Part shown: piece after piece, positions 5,855-59,027 of the stretch
Numbering within the stretch: position 1 is the stretch's first letter
Layout: each line of letters opens with the position of its first letter
Assembly: GCA_904063045.1 (NCBI GenBank)
Contig: CAJFCJ010000013.1
Span: forward strand, 1,346,156 to 1,410,155
Length of the DNA: 64,000 nt
Direction: 5' to 3'
Source: Dimorphilus gyrociliatus
Taxonomy: Eukaryota; Animalia; Annelida
Notes under the pieces: model-generated
The model's input: the letters and a program-made list of their open reading frames with translations, nothing else
Database searches by the model: none
Told to the model about the DNA's origin: nothing
Translations under genes and position numbers: made by a program

Positions 5855-7464
5855 TATATAAATAGTGTATAGATATACCAATGTACTATATAAATTTTGT
5901 ACTGTATACAAATTGATATAAATATCTTAGAAATGTTATTTAACAGGAATGTTCATTAATTGATGCAACTTCGTATATATAACTTAGTATGTACACTGTA
6001 TGTATGACATATTTTAGAAAAATTTCTTATTTTATATATAATTATAAAGATAAAGCTTTCTTTCATCTCAACAGTTTGTCAAGCTGAATTTTTGAAATTC
6101 ATTTATAAGAATTTAGTTGTATTCTTTCCAATAACAATATATAGTATATCATCATTTTGTTAATAATAAGTTTATGCGGCATATGAACAACGCATATAAT
6201 CGTATTCTGTCTGGATTTAGTGTCACTAGCAGATTTCAGTTGATTAATACTGCTGGCAATCAAGATTATAGAAGCAGTTTTTTGTCCAGAATGGGAGAAA
6301 ACACAATTAAGAAGTTTGTAGGAGGTGTGAGGGGGAGTAAGGAGGACAGAAAATACTCTCAGTGACGTGGGAGTAAAGTAAAAACATTACGTCAAATGGA
6401 GAGTGAATTGTGTATTATTATTATTATTATTATTGTTATCTATTTAATTTTTGTATAGCTTCTTGACAATAAAAATCACTGCTTCTATAATATAATTGTT
6501 GAAGAACTAGTCTAAATAGTTTTCTTTTCATATTTAGTAAAAGCGTATTCGAATTTAAAATGTTCTCCTTCTGGAACGTTTCGGAAATACTAAGATGTGG
6601 TAGATATATTGAATTTTTAGACAGAATAAATACGTGATCACCATACGGAAAGATTAGCTTCAGTCTTATTTATGACTTATTCATCATCTGCGTTAGTAAG
6701 ATAGAAGAGACAGATAGCCGTAGAATTTAGAATGTAACATACAGCGCCGCCTAATGGTTATAAGCTATTTACAACATTACGTGTATTCATATATTAAATG
6801 TTATTCTATCTTTGTAGAATATAAGAATTAGACATATACTGATACTAATAAATATATAATAAAGTTATACAAGTTTCAATACAAATATACTGTTTGTAAC
6901 TTATGATTCGCATATTCTTTTGCCTAACAGAACTCAATACAAAATACATACGAAACTATTTATAAAACAGATGCAGCAAAAGGCATTTTTATAGAAACAG
7001 CAATAAGCAGGCAATTTATAGCCACAATTCTTAGCACCATTAAATTAATGAACTTAAACTTAAAAAAAAAAAATAAAAAAAAAAAAACAAGAATTTTGTT
7101 TCTTTTTTTTTTTTAAATTATCGTCAACTAATACTTTGGAACGGAATATAATAATGAATTCCCATATACGACACAAGCCTAACTTAAAGTATCTTTCCTT
7201 TTCTTTCTCTTATATGTGTAGGTGTGCATGTGCATATGTACTGTTATTAAATGTACAATTGATTAGTTTAAACGAATATTATGTATATAATCTATTTTTA
7301 AATTTTGGAAGGATACTTTAAGGAACAAGAAGCACGCAGCGGAAATACATGGCATTGAATTATTTTTACAGAATTCCATCTCAGCCCCCCCCTTCTCTTT
7401 TCGAACTAGACAAAAGTAAAGAAAAAAAAATGCAGTTTAAACGTTAGCAAGATTAATATTAAAT

Positions 7465-9852
7465 TTAAATGGACGTTGAATTTTCACTATCGCTTTCAAC
7501 GCCATCATCTACAAATGGTATTTCTTCTTTGTTTAAGCGTTTAATAGTTAACCAGTTTCCGGTTTTATCTCTTCCTTGAATAATTGGAGCGAGGTATTGA
7601 TAGGAGACGCTATCCTTTAAATGACAAGCTAATTTAGCTAAATTCAATTCCACTAGTATAATCTAGCAAGAAAAAACAAAAATTTATAATTAGTATTTTA
7701 CAATATAAGTAGATGTGCAATATATTTTCTACAGTATATATAGCATAGTCTATATATAAATAAGTAAATAAAATGACGTAATACCTTTCCGGAAGTGCAT
7801 AGTGCAATCGGTGTTGATGATTGTGAACAAAGTACTGTGGAGAAGACTATGCTATCCGATATTTGTTCGCAGTATAAAAAATTCGAACTTTCTATATCGT
7901 GTATATACAATTTTCCATATTTCGTAAAAACGTATAAAAGTCCTAAATGCTGACTAGCCTGAAAATACAAAAAGAAAAAAACTTACAAATAAAAAAGAAC
8001 ACTTTGTGGAGTAGAACTCTTTTTTTTTAAATAGTAAAAAGTTGATTTATAACCTGAATAGAAATAGGAAAATCATAGTAATCTGTCGTATCGTGAAAAG
8101 TAATCTCTTCAGAATGGCTGGACAAAGCGTAATTTCCGTTTTGATGAGGTCCTAATTCTATAATATATACTTTGCCGAATCGACTTTGTTTATGTCTGGT
8201 CGCAACCGCCAGAATGTTGCTTTCCTTCCTGTTACCTTCGAATTGATAACGGAAGAAATGCACTGCATGGGCGGAAATGCATTGACCTAAATTATAGTCC
8301 TGAGAAAACAACTGTACAACTCCTTCGATGTACTCCTCCTATTGATGTGAAAGAGGAAATAGTAATTATAAAGTTATAAAAAAACCATTTAATAGTAGTC
8401 TTAAGCAATAAAACAAACGCATAGAGATAAAAAATAACAATAATAAATGCAATAGATTGATATCAATACTAGAAGAGTAAAGTAAACAGAGCGAAGCGGG
8501 CACTTAAAACGTCATAGAGAGTTAATGACAGTTTAATCATTCTATAAATCATAGAAGAAATAGGATATTTAATAGTACTAGTAGTAGTAAAAATAAAGAG
8601 ATATTAAATAAATTGAGAGATTTAAGTGCTCCTAATTGTCAAAAACTCTCTATGCATTCACTTTCCGTTTTCCCTCCACCTAACCCTTCCCCCAAACTGT
8701 TATTTTTTACTTTCTCCAGCTCTCTGTCTTTTCTTACTAAAACATCTTATTCGTTTACAAACCTTTGCTACTAGCGCTGTTAGAGCAAACCATTTATTAT
8801 TAGGAGCAACTTCGAAAGATACAATCTGCATGTCGGATAATCTTTTAGCGACATTCAATACTTTTCGAGGCTTATCGTCTGAGAAGAGAAACAAATTTTT
8901 TATTTGTATGTCTATTTACTTGGAAATAAAAATAAACAATAAAAAAGAAAGGAGAGAGAAGACCCACTCCTTCCTAGTACTTACTTTTATGAACGTCCCA
9001 ATACCAAATATCATCACCAGTAATGAAAGCCAAAACATCATTGTTTATCCATAACCAGAATTTTATAGATGATTGGCTCCTTATCCTCCTCTTACTTTGC
9101 TTGTTAATTATACGGGATCGATGATAAACGACAATATGTTGTTTATCTGTTGGTTAATTAGTTACATTATCATTTCCGTAGGGGATATTGATTTGTATGA
9201 GCAGTTCCCGCATGGGAAAAAAATTAATATAATGGATAGTTACAATAGCTCCTTTCGCCACTGAATCGATATTTCCTACTATTATACTGTTAAAAATCGA
9301 ACGATTCTTTTGTATTCTTTAACATATTTTTTTGTCGTCCATAGTTTATCAATAAATATGTTGTAAATTTATGTACATATATGAATACAAAATGAAGATT
9401 AACCATAAAATGGCAAATTACTCAAGTTAGGCTTTCACTAAGCGATATTTGATATTGTATAATACAATGGTTTCCAATTAAAATTTCTATTTATTCATTT
9501 TTTCTAAAATACTTACATCTACAAGCAATAAAGTCTCCAGCAGGACTTATTTGAGCTAATTCAGCTTCTATAGTATACTTTTGAATTCTAGGTTGATTTC
9601 TTTGACTTGTAGGATCGAATGAATAAACTTGACTGTTACACGTAGTATTATTCGGTTTGTCAACTGTTATACACATATATTTATCGCTCGTTAAACGAAC
9701 ACGAGACCACGTTAGCCTATCCTTTGGTATCTTATAATCCGGTAGCTAAAAGGGAAAATATTTATGTAGTGGGTTAATAAATAAAAACAAAATATCCTTA
9801 CGTCGTGAAGTTCGAACGTTCTTATTGGCGGTGAAGGCTCATAGCCTTGCAT
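7465..9852 (-). CDS. Clathrin heavy-chain terminal-domain (beta-propeller)-only protein, about 400 aa, 7 exons
   Basis: Exons translate to PPIRTFELHD|LPDYKI...LTSDKYMCI, IKFWLWINNDVLAFIT...WYW, KWFALTAL, EGVVQLFS...ISAHAVHF, KVYIIELG, DFPISIQ, LLYVFTKYGKLYIHDIES. These are collinear with CHC residues ~1-380 as recalled. Stop at 7465 after an acidic tail. Confidence 0.8.
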
Positions 9853-9988
9853 TGTTACCGCCTCAGATTTTCACTTCCTTCACATAATTCTCTTAGTAAC
9901 TACTTTTTTACGACACACAATACATAGGCCTAAATTATGCTTCGAACTGGTTGATCTACCAAGCTGTGCTAAAAACATAAAATTCAAA

Positions 9989-9999
9989 GCGCATGCGCA
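9989..9999. promoter_or_regulatory. NRF1/Ewg-type site upstream of the clathrin-TD gene
   Basis: GCGCATGCGCA about 140 bp upstream of the ATG at 9852. Confidence 0.5.
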
Positions 10000-13703: not shown

Positions 13704-16554
13704 TTATTTGTTAGGTTTATTTATGAAACGTAAATTCAAGTAGGCTAAAATTCGAAACAATAATATATAGCCGATTGGCGCCACAATGTTAAGCCATAGT
13801 GGCATAATATCTCCCTGTTTCTCGACAATATCATCTCCGCTTATTGTATTCGTACTATTGGTTTTGCAAACGTTAAATGCTGTTTCATTGGACGGAGCAC
13901 ATTTAAGAGGATCCCCGTATTTATATTCAACTATAAACAATCCACCAAATCCATAGCCCATCAAAGAGAGATATCTTAGCCATACTATGGCTTTTGGTAG
14001 TTGGCGAACGAACCATCCGCCAGCCAACATATTTGTCAACATAACTATGGCAGTACTTGCGAGCAAGGTTTTGAAATCCGTGAAAAGAGTTCCAAGAAAG
14101 ATTGCAATACCTTGAGCAGATATAGTTGTGAGAATTGTTAAGGCGATCCACATAAAAAAGTTTCCAGCACTGGGCATCAAATTCATAACCCAGTACATCA
14201 AGATCAATTGGCCAACAGGCTTAATCAAATGTAAAGGTATTTCGCTAATGTATTTAGCCATCATGAAAGCCGATAACCGGTAAGCGCCGGATGATCTTTC
14301 TCTATTGATTATTTTACACTCTGTCGGATCTAATTTAAAGTAGAAAACAAAAATGAAATAAAAAAAATGACTATTATTTAAAAAAAAAAAATGTCAGCAA
14401 ATTTACTTACATGAAGTAATAGATTGAAAAACAGCATTGAATTGGGTGTGTATGGCAATGAAGAATATCTAGAATAAAAAAAAAATGGAAAAATAATAAG
14501 AATCATTTCCTTAAATTAGAAATTCTTTGAGAAGATAAAAATTAATTGGTTTTAGCGAGGGACTTACAGCTCCAGTTCTATCAGCAAGTCTTTCCTCAGT
14601 TCTTGGTATTCTAAACCAAAATATCGATGCTATCGCGGCAACTAGAAATGTCTAATAAAAATGAATTCTTTTTGTTAATTCTCAGAAAAAAAATAACCAC
14701 ATCTTGTCTAATACTTACAAAAGTTAAATGTATATTACTTAGCAGTTGACCTCTGGCTGATTTGAAATTTCGTTTTCCAAGGGCAAGGAATTGAGTTACA
14801 AAACCAGTTGGCCACTTCAAGTCTAATTCATTGCTTCTATTATTTCTTTTCTCATCATCTAAACATGTATGTATTTCAAAAAAATAAAAAAATAATATAA
14901 GAAAAGATTTATTTAAGAAGGAAATAAATTTATCTTCTTGTCTAACCTTCGACAAGTGTACTGGAAGACTTCTTCATTTCCGTTTCCTCACCAGTCTCCG
15001 CATCTTGTGTTTGTAATATATTCCTTTAAAGAAAAAAATGATTCATATAATTATAGATAGAAAGAAAATGATGCAATAAATATGATATGAACATTAAACA
15101 CTGTATATATAGTTTTATTCCCCTAGTACTTATGTAATTTTTTGTATTTTATCTTTACGAAAAAAAAAATTAACCTATTTTCATAAGCTTCTAATAACAC
15201 TTTCTTTGCATCGGCGTCTTTAGCTTGCTCAACTGAAGAAAAATTATAGAATCAACTATAATTATCGTTTATTTGTAACAAATATTTAACCAGAAAGAAT
15301 TTACCTGCTACCTGTCATTCATCCCATGAGCAGATAGCTCTTTCTAGTTTAGTAAACATTTTGTATTGTGGACAGTTTGTATACAAAGTCGACTTACGTA
15401 AATGGTCAGCGGGATTATAGTTGGCTGAACAGGGTAGACCAATTTTTTCGAAATAAGGAACAACGTGAACTCTATCACCGAAATATCCTAACTGTATATA
15501 TTAAAAGTTTTTCTAATTGTTATTCACTTATTAATAAATGAATATATGTATAAAAGCATTTTTTATTACCCTTCCATCGACTAGAAGCATTATGTTATGA
15601 AACTTTGAAAATATATGACTACTTGGTTGATGAATAGTTGTTATAATCGGTAGACTTTTTGTTGATGAATATTCCTCTAAGGCTGCAAATAAATCAGTGG
15701 CAGCTCCTGAATCTAATCCAGTAGTTGGTTCCTAAAACATTTTATATTACGTATATTTAATTATTATAATACAATATCAACCAACATCAAGTAACATGAG
15801 TTTAGGATTGTTAAGTAGTTCGCAAGCTATACTCGCTCTTTTCTTTTCACCACCAGATAAACCTCTCATACTAACTCCTCCCATAACTAGGGTAATTAAA
15901 AATGATTAATGAATTTTCTTTTTTCTTATTTTATATGTCTTTACCAGTATCAATACAGTTCGTCAAGCCTAATACTTCAACAATTTCATCAACTTTCTTA
16001 AGCTTTTCCCTTTGACTCATACTGTCCGATAACCTTATTGTAGCGGTAAACTATTTATAGGAGGAAGAAAAACAAAATGAATTAATAATGTACTATAAGT
16101 GATATGGAATTCTTCAAATAGAACATTTTTAAAAAACACATACTGTTAAAGTTTCTCTCAGTGTTAACGCCTCGAAGAACAAATCTTGCTGCATTACGTA
16201 GCAAAATTTCCTTCTTATAGATTTATTAGGTACTTTTCCATCAACTAGAAGTTCGCCTGTATAAGAACATTGACTCCTTCCAGAGAGAATATTCATTAAA
16301 CTGGTTTTTCCTGCCCCACTTGGCCCTAAAATAGCTAAAATTTCCCCTGGTTTACATTCTCCTGATACATTGAAGAGAATTTGTTTCTTTTCCTTCTTTT
16401 TGGTCACTACTGACGCATTTATATTCTGGAACTGGAGGTGAAAACCTTGTTGTATGAGTTTTTTTCGTTCTTTTCCATCTGTTTCATCTAAACTATTAAA
16501 AAGAAAATGATATTTATTTTGGTAGTCAATGCGGGCTTTTATATTACAGATCAT
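13704..16554 (-). CDS. ABCG (white-family) half-transporter; start codon uncertain
   Basis: Walker [10 protein letters not shown], signature LSGGEKKR, Walker B MLLD|EPTTGLD, H-loop TTIHQP, C-terminal membrane domain (ORF 13704-14264); NBD-TMD order typical of ABCG. Confidence 0.92.
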
Positions 16555-18006
16555 TTGACCCAATTAATTTCGCTAAATAACTCATTTGATAATCTTTAGG
16601 CGGCCTTTTCTGAATTTTTTCAAACCGGAACTGTGGTGCAATACCGAGAGTAGACTCAGGGTGTCAAGGACGTTTCGTTAATATATTAGGGTTTATTAAG
16701 ATACGCCATCTCACGGTCTAAGACGTCTCTCACTTAAATAATTCTTTGTAATTTCTTTTGTATTGTAATATTTTAAAACAAAATATTGTGTCATCGAAAA
16801 TATTAGAACATTTAAATCAACATAACTGCGTCATTACTATCAAATCTAAAGCTAATATTAATAGAAAGCATGACAGAGATTGATCGTTTCATTACGAAAA
16901 TATGCAGAGTCATAACGTATTAGTGTATTACCTAAAAGCTTGGTTATCGTGGCCTTGATTTTTCTCATCTACTGGAATGTGATATATTGAAGATCTTTCC
17001 ATAGTTGAACACTAAAGTGATTATGAACAATTTTATTAACAGTAGAGTAAAACTATTGAACAGATCTTCTTTCGTTGAAGAAAGTTTAGATATGTAAATT
17101 CTTTCTCTATATATATTTCTTTATAAACTATTAGCCTATATGATAAGATTACTTATCTATTTCTCGCAACATATTGTGCAACAAGAGTCAAAAAATATCA
17201 CTTTGACATGTGAAAAATAAGAGAGCTAGTACAACGGATCTGTACATGCCGAATATTGCGAAAGAGATTGCAAATAGGTCAAGTTCTATTTTGTTGGAAT
17301 TTATAGAAAACAAACTTATTCTACAAAGTGTTTTGTTTATGCTAAAAAGTAATCTTTAATCCCATTTTAATCAATAATAATTAAAGTAGCATTACTACTT
17401 TAAAATTAAAATTAAATAGAAGAAAGAATAATTTTGTTCGAACATATTTTGTTCTTTTTGTGGAATATGCTCAAAGAAAATAAAAAAATTGTATTCTTTT
17501 CATATTTCTTTGGTTTATAGTTGCAAAGTGTTTTCATAATTCTTTTCTTTATGATTATATCACATATACATATAATCTATATATATATATATATGAATTA
17601 TAAAGAAACAGATAAAATAAGTGAATAGTTCTTTTTATGTTGCATATAGAGATAAATTAGAAATGTTCAGAATATATATATATGTTAATATTATTGAATA
17701 AAACTTCTATTGTTTTCAAAAGACCACTTGATGACTTTTTTATCTTTTATGTCACAATTACATTTTAAATGTTGAGATAAAGACTAATTTATATTAATAA
17801 ATGGTAACGCATTTAGATACAAGGAGACAGGCAATGGCATTGATCTTTAAGTTGTATAATAAAGTCTATAAATTTGTAATTTCCCTCAAAAATAATTTAA
17901 TCATAAAGCATTATCAACATTCATCTTATCAGTGTCATTGACCGAAATAAGCTTGAAAAAGAAGAATCCTTTTATTCTCTGGATAATAGATATAGATTTT
18001 TCTTCT

Positions 18007-20608: not shown

Positions 20609-21734
20609 TCAAAGTCTAGGTTTTTTCGCTTTTCTTCCTTTGTCGCGTGATTTTCTGTACTTTTTACATTTAGATTTAAGTGTTTTTCTATTCAATGACT
20701 TCATCCACTTTTTCTTCTTATCATAACTAATAATATGTTCAACGATATAGCTTCCCTTTTTTCTAGATCCAAACAGCAATTTCAAACCGCTTTTTATACC
20801 TCTACAACCATTACACCTTAAGATTAGACGCTTCTTTCTTAGTTTTTTCGATCCTTGAATTAACTTCCTTTTCGAGGATGTTTGTAAGACCTTCCTCGAA
20901 TTAATATTAATCAATCTGGTCCTTATCACTGCAGAAAAAAAAGTTTGCAAATTTATAAAGACATTCTTTCCAGTAAAATTGAATTATTTTTTATGACAAA
21001 CAATCTTTTTTTAAATCATGATTCGAATTCTAATAAGTTTTATTACGCCGTATCTACTTTGTTACTCTTTTAAGTGAAAGGCTTACGGAATTTTGAGGAA
21101 CATATCATCCTATTTGAAGGCTTTGTATTCATTTCGCATTCACCGCAAGAATTATCTGGAAAGTGAAAGAAGAATTTCATTATTAAGGTCGAAAAAGGAA
21201 ATAACTAAAATAATTACTGTTCATCTTTTTAATGATACTGTCGGTTGGTCTTACGGCTATACGTGCTGTAGGAGTGGTCTTTTGTGCTGCTTTTGGTGCC
21301 CTTACACAAGGATCCTTTTCCTCAAATTTGCTGCAATTCAAAATTACTGGCCAAGAATACCGATGCTTTTTCATTATAGGTTCACAGTGTCTTCTCGTAT
21401 CCTCACATAAACTTCTGCAAGGTTTTACTAAGGGATCGAAGCAGAGTGGAGCGAATAGAGTACATAAGAAGAGTCTTGTATGGGGAAAACAATTCTGATC
21501 GACAAGCTGAAGCCATATAGTTGACTGGGAAACAGCTTCGGGTACTGTCTCATGATCCAAAAGATTCGGTAAAACCATTTGAGTATAATTCAAATCCTTG
21601 CATAGTGACATATTTGATGGTATGTCGATGCAACGCCTATTTGAACGTATTTCTGAAGACATGGACCAATCTTCCCATTCTGCCGAAGCCAACATCCGTA
21701 GGCCGATGGCAATGAAGAACAGCAATCTATGCAT
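20609..21734 (-). CDS. SFRP1/2/5: Secreted frizzled-related protein (sFRP1/2/5 type), 3 exons
   Basis: Signal peptide; frizzled CRD (CIDIPSNMSLC..LPNLLDHET..FLCTLFAPLC..PCRSLCE..WPVILNCSKF); basic NTR-like C-terminal domain; no TM segments. Confidence 0.92.
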
Positions 21735-30932: not shown

Positions 30933-30944
30933 TGCGCATGCGCA
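30933..30944. promoter_or_regulatory. Perfect NRF1/Ewg palindrome in a bidirectional promoter
   Basis: TGCGCATGCGCA between divergent starts at 30788 (-) and 31133 (+, UQCR10). Confidence 0.7.
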
Positions 30945-37031: not shown

Positions 37032-39951
37032 ATGATTCTAAAACTCCTTATTTTTTGTAAGCTGGGAATTTTATTTTATTATTATTAACATTAATAATTT
37101 ATTAATTATTATTTCTACGTATAAAATACATACAAGCATGAAATTTTGATCAAATTTAAATAGGTAATTTCGGATTGTTTGCCCTAACATCAAGTGCAAG
37201 CGAGGCAGAACTTCATAAGCGTTTTAAAAATATTCAACCGGCAATTAGGCCTTTAAACGAAGGATTAACATCTGTTTTGGAAATTGATTTAGTATCACCA
37301 AAGGTCATGGATTTGGTAAGTACAAATATTATATTTATACAATACGCAAATACGAAACTTGGCTGCTAGAAAGAAACTGACTTATCGACGTATTGACTAG
37401 TAAATAATGAATTTCATACGATATACCTGTATAATATATACTGTATATGCTATGCTTATATAGTATGTAAAGGACTTTTATACCTTGTAGTCTACTAACT
37501 ACTAGCTCTTTTTATTCATTTATAAAGTAACAACTATTACCAAACTATATACCTTTAGACGTTTCTCTCTAGTCTTTCTTTCCGTTTCCTGCCTTTATCC
37601 TCTCTTCTATTTACGTTTATAAGGGGAGAGGATATACTGTATATTTTATACTTTCGTATAACACATATACATATAGTACGTAGATTCTATTTGCTTCTTT
37701 TTTATTGTATTTGTTATTACTTCCCTCTTTCATAACGCCTACAAAACAGGTAGAACATAAGAATCTTTTAAGGGTCAATAGTTGGCTACGTCTAAAATGG
37801 AAGGATGATCGCTTGAAATGGTCAAAAGAGGATTTTGCAGATGTGAATACAACTCGGCTACAAGTTCAGAATATTTGGACACCCAGAATTATTCTTTCAA
37901 ACATGTAAGACACTTCAAATCTGCTTAAACTTAATTTCTAGGTTTTCTATCTTTCCTTCACCCCTTCACACTCACTCTCCTCCCTGAAAAACACGCTTAT
38001 TAAAATAGAGAAAAGAAGAAGAGAGGGAAAAGAAAGAGAGAGAGAGAGAAAAAAGTAATCATAATCATAAAGGGATTTTTCATCAGTCTTTTCTTAATTA
38101 ATCTCTAATGTAATTATTTTTTTTCTCTCACTCTCTTCCTTTACCCTAATCTCCCTCCATCTTCTTTAAATAAGTTTTTCTGATCCTCTCTCTCTCACTT
38201 TCTCAATCATCACCTTTCCCTTGATATATAATATATGTGAGTATAGGTGGTGTATATACAGTATATATAATGTATATATCATGCAAAACCTACATATACG
38301 TTATATACTAATATATATATATATATGTATTGTGTAAATAGAGAGGATCCTAATTCCTTAAGATTTTACAACTAAAAAATGTTTGGCTTTCTTCTAAACA
38401 TCATATTTTGTTTGCTATTTCTTCTCAAGTTTATCATGCACAATACTGCTTTAAAAAATCGATTAGGAGGTCTACAAGCGTTTACCTATACAGTTGTATC
38501 TAACTATGGCTGTATAGGTGAAAAAAAACCAGATATATGCAGAATATACAGTATATATTTTAATGACCTCAATAATATGGTCGTTAAATATATATATGTA
38601 TATATACAGTATATATACTGTATAATATTTCAATATAAATGCAATTAATATAAAGGGGAGAAAGATTTACTAGAAATTTGAAATCCTGATGATAATAGAG
38701 TCTCTTGGGCGTCTAAAAGCGTCATTGTTGTACACCAATTGTTAAGGACTCTATAAAAAGTCGAAAGTAAATAGGTACTCATATTGTCAAGTGATTGTTG
38801 ATAGGTTTTATGTAATTTTTTCATTATATATTTTTTCTTCCTCGTTTTCAAAATTCTAATTTCTTCTTTTTGTTTGTTTGTTTGTTTTAGTTTGTTTTTT
38901 TTTTTTTTTAAAAAATATTTATAGGGCGGATACAGAATCTCTTGTTGCTTCGTCAGCATCTGAAAAATATTTAGTACGTGTTACTAGTGACGGTGATGTT
39001 ACTTGGACGTATCCAGCCATCTTCAATGTTGACTGTCATTTTGAATTTTGGAGATTTCCTTACGATACGCAACATTGTTGGCTACATTTTACAGTTGTTG
39101 ACTATTTATCTAATGAACTAAAGTTTACTATACCGAAAGGTATGAGGCAAACGCACAAAATTGAAAGTCGTGAATGGATAATAATGGAATTTAAACCATT
39201 TGTAATTAATCCGGACCAAGGAGGAGAAAATTATCCAGGTTTAACGTTTGTCGTTTCTATGAAACGGAAATCGACCTACCATTCAGCAGTTTATGTTACT
39301 CCCTGCATCTTTACTATAATGATGACGTCTCTAATATTCTGGATACCAAGCCATATTAATGATAGACTTACTATTATAGCGTTACTTTTTATTACAACAT
39401 TAATACTGTTTATCTCTCTTACGCAATATCTTCCAGTTTCAATTGGTTCTATTCCAGCATTGGCGCTATATTATCATTTCACCCTATTCTTTCTGTTTTT
39501 TGTACTATTTATCAATATTATTCTATTGAATATTAAAGATAGAAAATTCAAGACCGAAAGCGTTCCCAATTTGTGTAGAAAACTGTTTTTGGGTAAACTA
39601 AGGACTCTTTTCTGCGTTAGAAAGTTTCAATATCTACCCGTTGATAGTTCGGGAGTAAATTCAATGAGTAGAACAATGATAAATGCCGATGATTTATTTG
39701 ATAACGAAGCTCTTCCAAGATCACCAACCCTTTCGTTGGAGAAGACGTTAGAAGATATAAGGAAGTACTTAAGAGTTTGCGCTCAATTGCAAAATAACCC
39801 ACAGGCGAGCAACAATAACGAGAATGCTACATCTCATAAGGAGTTAGTCGACAACGAATGGAACCAATTAACGACTGTCCTCGAGAGACTTTTCTTTTGT
39901 TTCTATATCGTTTTTAACGTGATTTTGTCGATAGCTCTATTATCCCATTAA
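37032..39951 (+). CDS. Cys-loop ligand-gated ion channel, divergent nAChR-like non-alpha subunit, 4 exons
   Basis: Signal peptide; RP motif; WKDDRLKW, IWTPRI; Cys-loop CHFEFWRFPYDTQHC; four TM helices in exon 38925-39951; no vicinal Cys in loop C. Confidence 0.9.
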
Positions 39952-40631: not shown

Positions 40632-48217
<7,586 letters not shown>

Positions 48218-55781: not shown

Positions 55782-58700
55782 TCATAGCTCTATTAAATCA
55801 TTGACTATATCGGCTAATCTGGGATAAGAGGACATTGTTTGACCATAACAGATAGTGATAGATTTGTTTTTTCCTTTTAAATCAGTCATAACAGCTTGGC
55901 AAATAGATGAACTAACATTCTTGCAGTGGTTTACCTCTAAAATGGTAATGCTATGCAAGTCCTTCAATGGTTCTAGAACTTTATTTGTCAGTTGATGGCA
56001 ACCAGTAAGAACAACGTGACCAAGGTGTTTTGCTTCAGTCATACCCGTAAGAACATTGTCGGAAACTTGTGAACAATAGGCTAACTCGAGTTTGACTAGA
56101 ATTTGCATATGACGCACAACATGATAAACTCCAGAGTCCGTAATATCCGTTCCGCTTAGCGAGATTCCCGAAATGAACTTTAGTTTTTGACTGATAGCCG
56201 TCAATGACGGCGTTGGAAGTAGTAAGCGAATAGCATCGTCGTGTAATCCTTCCATCCAGCTAAGGTCTAATGTTCTTAGTCGACTAGTGTGAACCTTGGC
56301 CAATGCCGAACAGCCAGCCATCGAATTTGAACCGATGAACAAGTGTTCCAGATGTGGTAATCTCATAAGTAGCCATTCTAATTGTTCCCTTGAAACATTC
56401 GTATTGCTCAGATTAACTGATAAAGGCTGTCGTCGTACAATACCAGTTAAGATGAAAGTATTCAATGGCCTACCAGACACATCAATAGAATACCAATATC
56501 TCCTATCCATTAGCCATCTACAAAATGCTTTGCACGCACACATTGTATTAACTAACGATTTTTTATCCAAGAATTCGAATATCCTCTGCCATATTTCCTT
56601 TTCAAAAACATGGTAACCTCCTCCTTTCTGTTTCACGTATAGAGGTGGCGGTACTATAGGTGCAGGCCTAACTACTACCTCTGATAAACGATTTGCGTTT
56701 AAGTATTCATTTAAGGACAAAATTTTCGGACAAGGAGTTGCCGCTTCAGGTGGGGATGGTACAGAAGCAATTCCATCTTCGCTAACTGGATTATCTCCCG
56801 TCCACGCTTCCTTGTGAATTTTTGAAGAATTCTTTTGACAAAATGGACATTCCCAAGACGCTGGCAGGTCTTCACATAATCCACCAGCTGGAAGACTAGA
56901 GTCTTTTGCATGTATACACCGAGGATGGGATATTTTCCAGCAGATTGAACACTCCATGAGTAAATCGTTGGCTTCTTGGATATCGTCCAAATAAGGCGGA
57001 GCCTCGCGCCCCTCTCCGGAATCGCAATAGTAACAGGCCGCCGTTGACGGAAGTAGAGGCGCCATACACTGTCTAGATATACAAGTCTGTTTCATTCGTC
57101 CAGGGCCTCCGAACTTTCTCATATCTTTACAGAAATGACATTCACCGCAATCAGTACGAGTACACGGTTCGCATTTCTTACATCTGACCCTACGATGATG
57201 ATGACTTCCCTTGCCCTTATCACCTATTTGAGATTCAACACCGTTACTTCCGTTAGGTGTATTTGGACCCAATCGATTAATGCCCTTTGACCTTTTCATT
57301 ATTCTACTCCCAGTACAGCTACTATACATGTTGGACATTCCCCGACCTCTCTATATGTAGGTTAAACTCGTCTTAATTAGTGTATTAATTAAAAATTTAA
57401 AAAATCAATAAATTTCCTTTGTTTACCTTTCGAGCCGGCCAAGCTAAAAGTGGTTCGTCGCTTATAGCTAATTCTGGAGGATCATTTCGATGTTGATCGA
57501 CAAGTTCCTGTGTTGTTTAATTGATTAACAAATTAATTAGTTTTTAACGTGCAATACCTTTAATTTCTTTAATAATTGTGGAGCGTTCCGAACTTCGCTT
57601 GGTACATGGCGTTTATTGGACGGTAAATTTTCAAGCCAGTTTATTAAAATATCAAGACCTTCTATCTCGAAGGGTGTCATGTAAATTTTCTTGGGAACTT
57701 TCGGTTTAATTTCCTTAACGTCCGGAGATTCTTTGGCTTCTTCTTTCAAATCTAAATCGTTCAATGTTTCTTTTTTAATTTGAGTCTGAGTTTCACTTTC
57801 GGTAGATCCGTCTTCTTTTTTTATTTCTTCAGGTGTACCCTGATTTTCGGGCGTTACCGATCGTAACGGTGGATTTAATAGGAGACTACAATATCTTTCG
57901 GCACAATACCACATCATTTCGGTAAAAAATGGAAATTTGAATTTGTTTTGTACTAAGGTACGATCCTCCAAAGAAGCTATCTCTATTTGTAAAGGAATAT
58001 TGAAGCTATGAAGGAAATTTCCTCCGAATACAAGGGAATCTTCTGGGGTATAAACGCCGTGTATCCACCCTGATAGTTCGATAAAGATCTATTATTATAC
58101 TCTCTATGATTGCTAAGATAGATAAAAAATTTTACCGGTTGGAATGAAGAACGTCCACCCAGCTGACAAACGTACTCTTTGGCAATCTGGAACGAGATCA
58201 GCGAAAAATTGACGATTTTGTTTTCCAGACATTACCCAATTTTCGTAAATTTGTAAATTTGAAGAAGTGGGTGGTATCATCCAAAAAAATTTGGAACCAT
58301 GCAGAACATGGTACCAAACTGATGTACCACTCATATCTATGTGAAAATCGGTGTAGCATCCTTTAACACTCATCAAACAGTATTTTTGAACTTTTGGATA
58401 TTTCATTTTGTCCAAGGCATTTGTACCTTCGCTTTGTGAATCTTTCAAGTGAAGAGGCCAAACACAATCGACCCAGTCAATTTGTCTTATAACTGTAGGT
58501 TGTTCAACATATGTAGATAATTTTGTATGGCTAAATTCCAAAGAAATAACGTTGAGCAACTTCGTTCTACTTTCAGGTTTCGTATAGTATTCGATCCAAT
58601 CTTTCACCGACATATGCAAAGAATTTTGGCTCTCAACATCCATCACGTCCAAGATTCGTCTGCCTCCAACGCATGCCTTTACGTCCATTACAGTGAAATT

Positions 58701-59027
58701 CTTACTGGGTACTCTTAATCCTAAGCCTGTTTTGTCCTTGACTAGTATTGGTGTAGAGAAGCCGTTCTTTTGAAAGTAGCATATCCTTAGATCGGGTCCT
58801 TTTAACTCTTTTATGTGTTTATGGTTATATGAATTTGACTTCAGTTTTTCTTCCATATTGAAGTCTCTGCCGCGCTCATTTTCTGAAGGCGTTTCGCTAC
58901 GATCATCGTATACAATTCTTTCAGTTGATCGCTAAAAAAAAGATTCAGAAATTTGAAATTATTAGTTCACGAATATAAAGATTCGTACCAAATTTCGGCC
59001 GCGAGATTTTTTCTCCTCTTCCCCCAT
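55782..59027 (-). CDS. KDM2A/B: Lysine demethylase KDM2 (JmjC, CXXC, PHD, F-box, LRR)
   Basis: JmjC YTDFHIDMSGTSVWYH; CXXC RRVRCKKCEPC..CKDMRKFGGPGRMKQTCISRQC; PHD; F-box IWQRIFEFL; LRRs. Confidence 0.96.

Follow-up and report, generated by a model that had tools for sequence, protein, structure and literature searches.

Background

Can the amino-terminal head of the clathrin heavy chain (CHC) exist as a gene in its own right, or is a locus that encodes only this part the remnant, or the misread front end, of a full-length gene? Clathrin's terminal domain is among the best-studied peptide-docking hubs, and is usually treated as no more than the foot of the triskelion. Canonical CHC, at about 1675 residues overall, also has a leg of CHCR repeats, a light-chain region and a trimerisation domain, all of which are required for clathrin assembly. 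The question is raised by a 64,000-nucleotide stretch of DNA from the annelid Dimorphilus gyrociliatus (contig CAJFCJ010000013.1, positions 1,346,156 to 1,410,155 of the forward strand), hereafter the window, in whose coordinates all positions are given. A minus-strand gene at 9852-7465 of the window had been taken, in a sequence-only reading, for a CHC paralog reduced to its propeller. We conclude, with a probability of roughly 0.8, that the locus is an intact, selected and probably expressed gene for a 404-residue stand-alone clathrin terminal-domain protein, orthologous to an old bilaterian family.

Gene structure, conservation and selection

Two sequences from related worms were used for comparison. 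L002 is an orthologous genomic locus of 10.3 kb from public assemblies, of which L001 and L003 are partial copies. L004 is a 1346-nucleotide intron-less contig from a third relative, found in another run, which encodes the 404-residue protein P0123. This contig and its protein were found with a mixed alignment (A2); word-index searches with protein P0007 or alignment A1 added few members. A frame scan of the minus strand of the window gave seven exons with GT-AG borders and consistent phases that together encode 404 residues, in agreement with the seven in-frame exons and some 400 residues originally proposed. The parts of the gene are listed below; "family profile" refers to the short protein family described in a later section.

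9802..9852, minus strand: exon 1, 17 codons from the ATG, placed by the frame scan; 98% identity with L002, both having a GTAAGG donor
9517..9745, minus strand: exon 2, blade 1 region, with a conserved Trp where CHC has F27; family profile 18-90; gap-free in L002
8985..9146, minus strand: exon 3, clathrin-box groove region; Protein Data Bank (PDB) match to CHC 96-132; family profile 100-141
8763..8878, minus strand: exon 4, W-box residues and a Trp equivalent to CHC W164; family profile 146-181
8054..8338, minus strand: exon 5, arrestin-box region, blades 4-5; CHC 177-265 (E 2e-9); proportion of nonsynonymous differences (pN) 0.013
7785..7958, minus strand: exon 6, blades 6-7; CHC 271-307; family profile 278-334
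7465..7662, minus strand: exon 7, last strand, short helices, disordered acidic tail and stop codon (7467-7465); length and stop position as in L002 and L004
7468..7527, minus strand: last 20 codons, an acidic Ser/Asp/Glu-rich tract ending T-S-I-COOH (class I PDZ-ligand form)
9853..9945, minus strand: 5' untranslated region (UTR), to the reach of the relative's spliced contig; L004 bases 1-143 lie on window 9945-9803 at 92% identity
7418..7464, minus strand: 3' UTR, to the reach of the relative's contig; L004 bases 1109-1345 lie on window 7664-7418

An open frame at 9318-9157, within intron 2, was rejected as an exon: its phases are incompatible with those of the model, nothing in CHC or the family corresponds to it, and it is skipped in L004.

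In a global alignment of the window with L002, all exons were gap-free and all splice sites and the stop position were kept. The introns had from 1 to 133 gap columns (at least 38 in five of the six), with five of the six at 67-75% identity. The encoded proteins share 90% of their amino acids, and the stop is TAA in the window and TGA in L002 at one codon position, which is common to all three taxa. The blocks of L004 fit the seven exons exactly, with 93 nucleotides of 5' UTR and about 45 nucleotides of 3' UTR in addition, and this spliced contig ends its reading frame at the same stop instead of continuing into leg repeats. Its split codons also fit the model, giving the predicted N at the junction of exons 3 and 4, and H at the junction of exons 2 and 3 where the window has Y.

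Ratios of nonsynonymous to synonymous change (dN/dS), obtained from exon-by-exon counts, were 0.060 for the window and L002, 0.050 for the window and L004, and 0.052 for L002 and L004, at dS values of 0.81, 0.90 and 0.48, respectively. All three ratios are far from 1, and the frame is intact, as first reported. The gene is real and under strong purifying selection, and it is probably expressed.

Fold and absence of coat-forming parts

Whole-protein tests (Pfam, PDB and folding) were performed on P0123, the 90%-identical ortholog, while the window's exons were run singly. In phmmer searches of PDB sequences, exon 3 matched CHC 96-132 (E 0.07, top-ranked), exon 5 matched CHC 177-265 (E 2e-9) and exon 6 matched CHC 271-307 (E 4e-3), and clathrin was the sole matching family among the three; exons 2, 4 and 7, each alone, gave no clathrin match in this search. 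P0123 aligned with CHC1 residues 6-327 (E 2e-40). Identity to CHC is about 25%. The collinearity with the terminal domain that was first described is thus borne out by the order of exons 3, 5 and 6 and by the span of the P0123 match.

An AlphaFold (AF2) model of P0123, built from a 36-sequence family alignment, had a mean predicted local distance difference test score (pLDDT) of 87.6 and a predicted template-modelling score (pTM) of 0.87. It comprises a propeller (residues 10-345) and a pair of short helices (347-367), after which the chain is a disordered tail beginning near residue 370, with pLDDT below 50 from about residue 374 onward. When the model was compared with the PDB by Foldseek, 39 CHC terminal-domain chains ranked first, together with two partial ones, at E values of 1e-35 to 1e-30, template-modelling (TM) scores of 0.85-0.94 by target and root-mean-square deviations of about 2 Å; the best of them, at E 1e-35, had TM 0.91-0.94 and deviations of 2.0-2.2 Å. 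The alignments span 356-366 columns, and the solved constructs have about 349-363 residues. Propellers of the WD40 type, from G-beta and WDR91, trailed at E 1e-11 and TM 0.4-0.5. An ESM Atlas feature search returned CHC fragment clusters only. The predicted fold is therefore that of the seven-bladed CHC terminal-domain propeller, and an unrelated or generic WD40 protein is ruled out because the CHC chains rank so far ahead. The start of the linker, which had also been claimed, is present structurally in the two helices and the Foldseek span; by sequence the claim does not hold, as exon 7 has no significant CHC match.

A tblastn search with a 1625-residue CHC matched the terminal-domain exons only, and no leg repeats were found in the whole 64-kb window, which extends the earlier remark that leg exons are missing downstream. 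The protein ends at 404 residues in all three taxa. Because it is without leg repeats, light-chain site and trimerisation domain, it can form no triskelia or lattices. Since leg and hub were looked for across the 64-kb window and are absent, the gene stands outside the canonical heavy-chain family in the functional sense.

These results also bear on the possibility that the locus is an artefact, that is, a truncated model or mis-assembly of a canonical heavy chain, or a decaying fragment. The stop codon is at the same position in three taxa, the spliced contig carries both UTRs, dN/dS is 0.05 and the 64 kb hold no leg exons. A canonical fragment would be expected to be nearly identical to CHC, not 25% identical. 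Because the exons are gap-free, L004 is spliced, dN/dS is low and the stop is shared, pseudogene, mis-assembly and truncated canonical model are excluded for practical purposes.

A short terminal-domain family in bilaterians

If the gene is not a broken heavy chain, where does it come from? A phmmer search of 1.8 billion representative proteins with exon 5 gave 67 matches, of which the best full-length ones were 340-430 residues long and scored above canonical CHC. Family members have 369-403 residues, and the window's protein, at 404, is of the same length class. This sole exhaustive search of the family used one 95-residue exon, and the groups listed here by source names are a lower bound on its range:

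annelids: Owenia, Ridgeia
molluscs: Physella, Biomphalaria, Aplysia, Elysia, Haliotis, Littorina, Octopus and a chiton
nemerteans: Lineus, Tubulanus
brachiopod: Lingula
priapulid: Priapulus
chelicerates: horseshoe crabs, scorpions and many mites
myriapod: Strigamia
echinoderms: Patiria, Antedon
hemichordates: Glandiceps, Ptychodera
vertebrates: lampreys, caecilians and sea turtles

The database entries are automatic predictions named "clathrin heavy chain 1-like", "2-like" or "hypothetical", for example Lingula XP_013398554.1, Petromyzon XP_032823741.1, Limulus XP_013786453.1 and Physella XP_059169269.1. Clathrin_propel is the sole Pfam domain in the family and was above its cut-off in 7 of the 10 members scanned. 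Some members have longer models: Owenia fusiformis P0002 (1087 residues) has a low-complexity extension of about 700 residues after the propeller, and the house-dust mite proteins P0094 and P0089 (about 684 residues) have an N-terminal extension and inserts, likewise of low complexity; both may be model artefacts.

Exons 2 to 6 of the window matched the family profile in order, with scores, given from the highest down, of 126, 57, 33, 33 and 29 bits against 65, 33, 3.5, 17 and 9 bits on the CHC profile. The pairs include 126 against 65 bits for exon 5, 33.5 against 3.5 for exon 2 and 29.4 against 9.3 for exon 4. In a tree made by a quick method with six out-group rows, in which the window is represented by exon 5 only, all 24 short-family rows including that exon formed one clade (Shimodaira-Hasegawa-like approximate likelihood ratio test 100) with a stem of 1.07 changes per column, separate from the vertebrate, insect and nematode CHC heads. 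Within the clade, ambulacrarians, vertebrates and protostomes split roughly as the species do, and the window's exon lies beside that of the annelid Owenia. Few members have diverged as far as the worm protein. By its sequence, the gene is best placed in an old bilaterian family whose separation from canonical CHC predates the divergence of the phyla. The description of a CHC paralog reduced to its propeller therefore stands as to what the protein is (a propeller with a helical stub and an acidic tail) and falls as to a local reduction, since orthologs of about 370-400 residues, for which a survey had been suggested, occur across many phyla.

The presence of vertebrate members raises the possibility that the gene is the invertebrate ortholog of vertebrate CLHC1 (C2orf63; clathrin heavy chain linker domain-containing protein 1). 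CLHC1 is a short vertebrate clathrin-linker-domain protein of about 586 residues that has no coat-forming leg. In favour of this identity, some family members carry UniRef names taken from the linker core motif. Against it, no match from the exon 5 search was called CLHC1 among the names looked up, the members from lampreys, caecilians and turtles go by the name clathrin heavy chain-like, and the short family is of 370-400 residues. We regard orthology with CLHC1 as very improbable.

The acidic tail

The acidic tail and the stop that follows it, both part of the first description, are present and conserved in the relatives. The T-S-I-COOH end occurs in the window, L002 and P0123, and the last five residues are identical in the three taxa. 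Despite its disorder in the model, the tail is under as much constraint as the propeller (exon 7, window and L002: pN 0.042 against a proportion of synonymous differences, pS, of 0.59). Ends of the form [ST]-x-[VILF] recur elsewhere in the family: mites and a scorpion have an acidic run followed by I/V-T-R-L, abalone has S-T-L, both hemichordates have T-T-V, lampreys T-A-V and caecilians T-S-V. About 4% of ends would be expected to take this form by composition, and it was found in at least 5 of 17-20 lineages (binomial p 5e-4 to 1e-3, a rough value, given that the lineages are partly dependent on one another and that some of the C-termini come from unverified models). That the tail tethers the protein to PDZ scaffolds is a testable idea suggested by these sequences.

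Many members without a PDZ-like end have instead a conserved Cys 1-2 residues before the end, following an R-L-E-K helix (for example ...E-K-V-I-C-P, ...E-K-A-I-C-Q and ...K-T-L-C-R). Such ends were seen in mollusc, nemertean and scorpion proteins (P0008, P0081, P0105, P0126-P0132 and P0087), and the Cys is a possible lipidation or redox site.

Peptide-binding grooves and proposed function

What, then, might a clathrin head do without a coat? The residues that define the four peptide grooves of the terminal domain are given in Table 2 of PMC5182127, and were compared across 23 family rows. In the arrestin box, W164 is kept in 23 of 23 rows, Q192 in 22 and a hydrophobic residue at L183 in all 23; the window keeps all three positions. 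In the W box, Q152 is Q or E in every row and I154 is V or I in 20 of 23, and the window has Q and V. In the clathrin box, Q89 is Q in 10 rows and E in 9, and F91 is F or Y in 19. The Royle-box residue F9 is aliphatic in the family.

Taken with the tail, these patterns lead us to propose a role for this protein, in which the seven-bladed CHC-type propeller is followed by two short helices, equivalent to the very beginning of the linker, and by some 35 residues of disordered acidic tail with T-S-I at the end. It would be a docking module for short linear motifs, either soluble or tethered to a scaffold, a role to which we give an even chance or slightly less. Docking would take place through the retained arrestin-box and W-box grooves and not the classical clathrin-box groove; we infer from the residues kept that motifs of the former kinds are the likelier ligands. 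The tail, having the class I PDZ-ligand form, may place the protein on PDZ scaffolds, where it would hold, or compete for, peptides of the endocytic-adaptor type while building no coat.

Several observations weigh against this account of the gene and its function. The evidence for splicing comes from a relative's intron-less contig, whose library type was not seen, and not from reads of this species. In the HMMER check suggested at the outset, neither Pfam Clathrin_propel nor Clathrin-link reached its gathering score, for single exons or for P0123, and the single-exon scan gave only a chance HDNR match (E 0.016). Exon 7 has no profile match to the C-terminal helix of the family (of the type basic-x-x-x-I-A-x-R-L-E-K); an I-K-R-L-N-K stretch in this exon, following an insertion, is invariant in the three taxa and resembles the helix motif. 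In the HMMER alignment the window has V at Q89 and Y at F91, positions at which a neighbouring 4-residue insertion makes the alignment less certain and shifted the fragment alignment, and at F9 of the Royle box it has T. Canonical clathrin-box binding may thus be lost in this animal, and several of the site residues that are retained, such as W164, may be kept for folding and not for binding. The PDZ-like end is absent from most molluscs (abalone excepted), horseshoe crabs, echinoderms, nemerteans, the priapulid and the turtle models, although some of the C-termini lacking it belong to unverified gene models, and the family is not defined by it.

The state of the clathrin box also decides how much can be made of the decoy proposed in the sequence-only reading. 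A dominant-negative decoy would be a free propeller that soaks up the clathrin-box motifs (L-hydrophobic-x-hydrophobic-[DE]) of AP-2, epsin, amphiphysin and similar adaptors and so damps coat recruitment. The Foldseek result identifies the fold as the adaptor-binding domain, everything needed for assembly is absent, and 19 of 23 family rows have Q or E at Q89, as 19 have F or Y at F91, all of which would suit such a protein. In this animal, however, and in two other annelid-like rows, Q89 is replaced by a hydrophobic residue (V in the window, I in P0123). Q89M, Q89A and changes at F91 are listed among the mutations that disrupt the clathrin box (PMC5182127), and Q89A with F91K lowered capture by the AP2 clathrin-box motif (PMC5182127). 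A pure decoy would also leave the conserved tail unexplained. Given a hydrophobic residue at Q89, while those of the arrestin and W boxes are retained, it appears doubtful here that the protein is a simple decoy for classical clathrin-box motifs, and we consider a decoy role in general unlikely.

A role outside trafficking would have the propeller recognise other peptides, for example at microtubules or the spindle, where the adaptor sites of canonical clathrin bind GTSE1 and TACC3 partners, or in a tissue-specific structure. The long stem between the family and CHC (1.07 changes per column) and the partial conservation of the groove sites point in this direction, and the titles of solved complexes show the same grooves with GTSE1, HURP and TACC3-related ligands. 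The grooves that are kept are nevertheless those that endocytic adaptors use, and to this role, too, we assign a small probability.

With docking at the arrestin and W boxes as the preferred role, a broader scenario can be tentatively drawn, which we put well short of an even chance. Bilaterian ancestors would have had a monomeric, non-coat clathrin head with a PDZ-anchored tail, which captured arrestin-box or W-box motifs and regulated endocytosis or signalling locally without the need for a lattice, and the gene would later have been lost repeatedly. Repeated loss would explain how the family was overlooked, the gene not being known in the usual model organisms.

Putative promoter motif and genomic neighbourhood

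The window is AT-rich animal DNA (fraction of G and C about 0.30) with compact genes. An NRF1-type promoter site had been reported for the gene, and the palindrome is indeed present as an exact match, at the first of the positions below. The exact sequence GCGCATGCGC occurs twice in the window (9989-9998 and 30934-30943) against 0.07 expected copies. The copy at 9989-9998 and the following 90 or so nucleotides are nearly identical in L002 though dS is 0.8 and synonymous sites approach saturation, which suggests that a core promoter or 5' UTR has been conserved; the promoter role itself is presumptive. The other features of the neighbourhood are as follows.

9989..9998, palindromic: GCGCATGCGC, NRF1-type, about 44 nucleotides upstream of the 5' end of L004
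5458-5733, minus strand: helix-turn-helix open reading frame of a Sleeping Beauty/Tc1-type (Tc1/mariner) transposase (E 8e-9, below the Pfam cut-off), downstream of the gene
13707-16563, minus strand: ABCG-type transporter
21186-21734, minus strand: protein with an Fz cysteine-rich domain
38878-39948, plus strand: Cys-loop receptor subunit
43153-43872, minus strand: PI3-kinase
55785-58856, minus strand: KDM2-like protein (JmjC, CXXC, PHD and F-box)

In one coral metatranscriptome run, 19% of the sampled words from window 7400-9900 were found, which suggests that the worm or a close relative, and the transcript of the gene, occur in reef samples.

Comparison with known systems

A literature search found no paper that describes a terminal-domain-only clathrin paralog family or a link to PDZ. 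A survey of CHC genes reports a single CHC-encoding gene in lamprey (PMC6548504). Because the database source names include a 376-residue short-family member from lamprey, this published gene-family history is incomplete. The family proteins were already public as automatic predictions and their function is inferred here, which tempers the significance of the finding. The terminal domain nonetheless exists alone, as a conserved and strongly selected gene, in many animal phyla and three vertebrate groups, and because of this it has a function independent of the coat.

Compared with the terminal domain of CHC17/CLTC and CHC22/CLTCL1 (residues 1-330 and the start of the linker), the worm protein has the same propeller fold, is collinear over residues 6-327, and retains the arrestin-box and W-box residues. 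Unlike canonical CHC, to which it is about 25% identical, it has no distal or proximal leg, light-chain site or trimerisation domain, it is changed at Q89 and at F9 of the Royle box, and it carries a disordered acidic tail of its own, PDZ-ligand-like at the end. CLHC1 is set apart from the short family by length and names only, and the papers that mention it do so incidentally.

Propellers without a leg also occur in nematodes, in Pristionchus pacificus (P0104/P0066; 572 residues) and Caenorhabditis angaria (P0108; 639 residues). These fall outside the short-family clade, in an unresolved position beside canonical CHC in the tree, and are probably independent truncations or partial gene models. 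An older Pristionchus model of 971 residues joins a PDZ domain to the propeller; it may be a merged gene model, but is curious in view of the PDZ-ligand-like tails in the short family.

The closest likeness is to the "clathrin heavy chain 1-like" and "2-like" proteins of 370-400 residues, with which the worm protein shares length, architecture, clade and its best exon profile scores; unlike most of them, it is below the Clathrin_propel cut-off and has an insertion in the C-terminal helix region. As a natural experiment on the importance of the grooves, with a clathrin box that drifts and arrestin and W boxes that are retained, this family also offers a directly testable link between the clathrin terminal domain and PDZ scaffolds.

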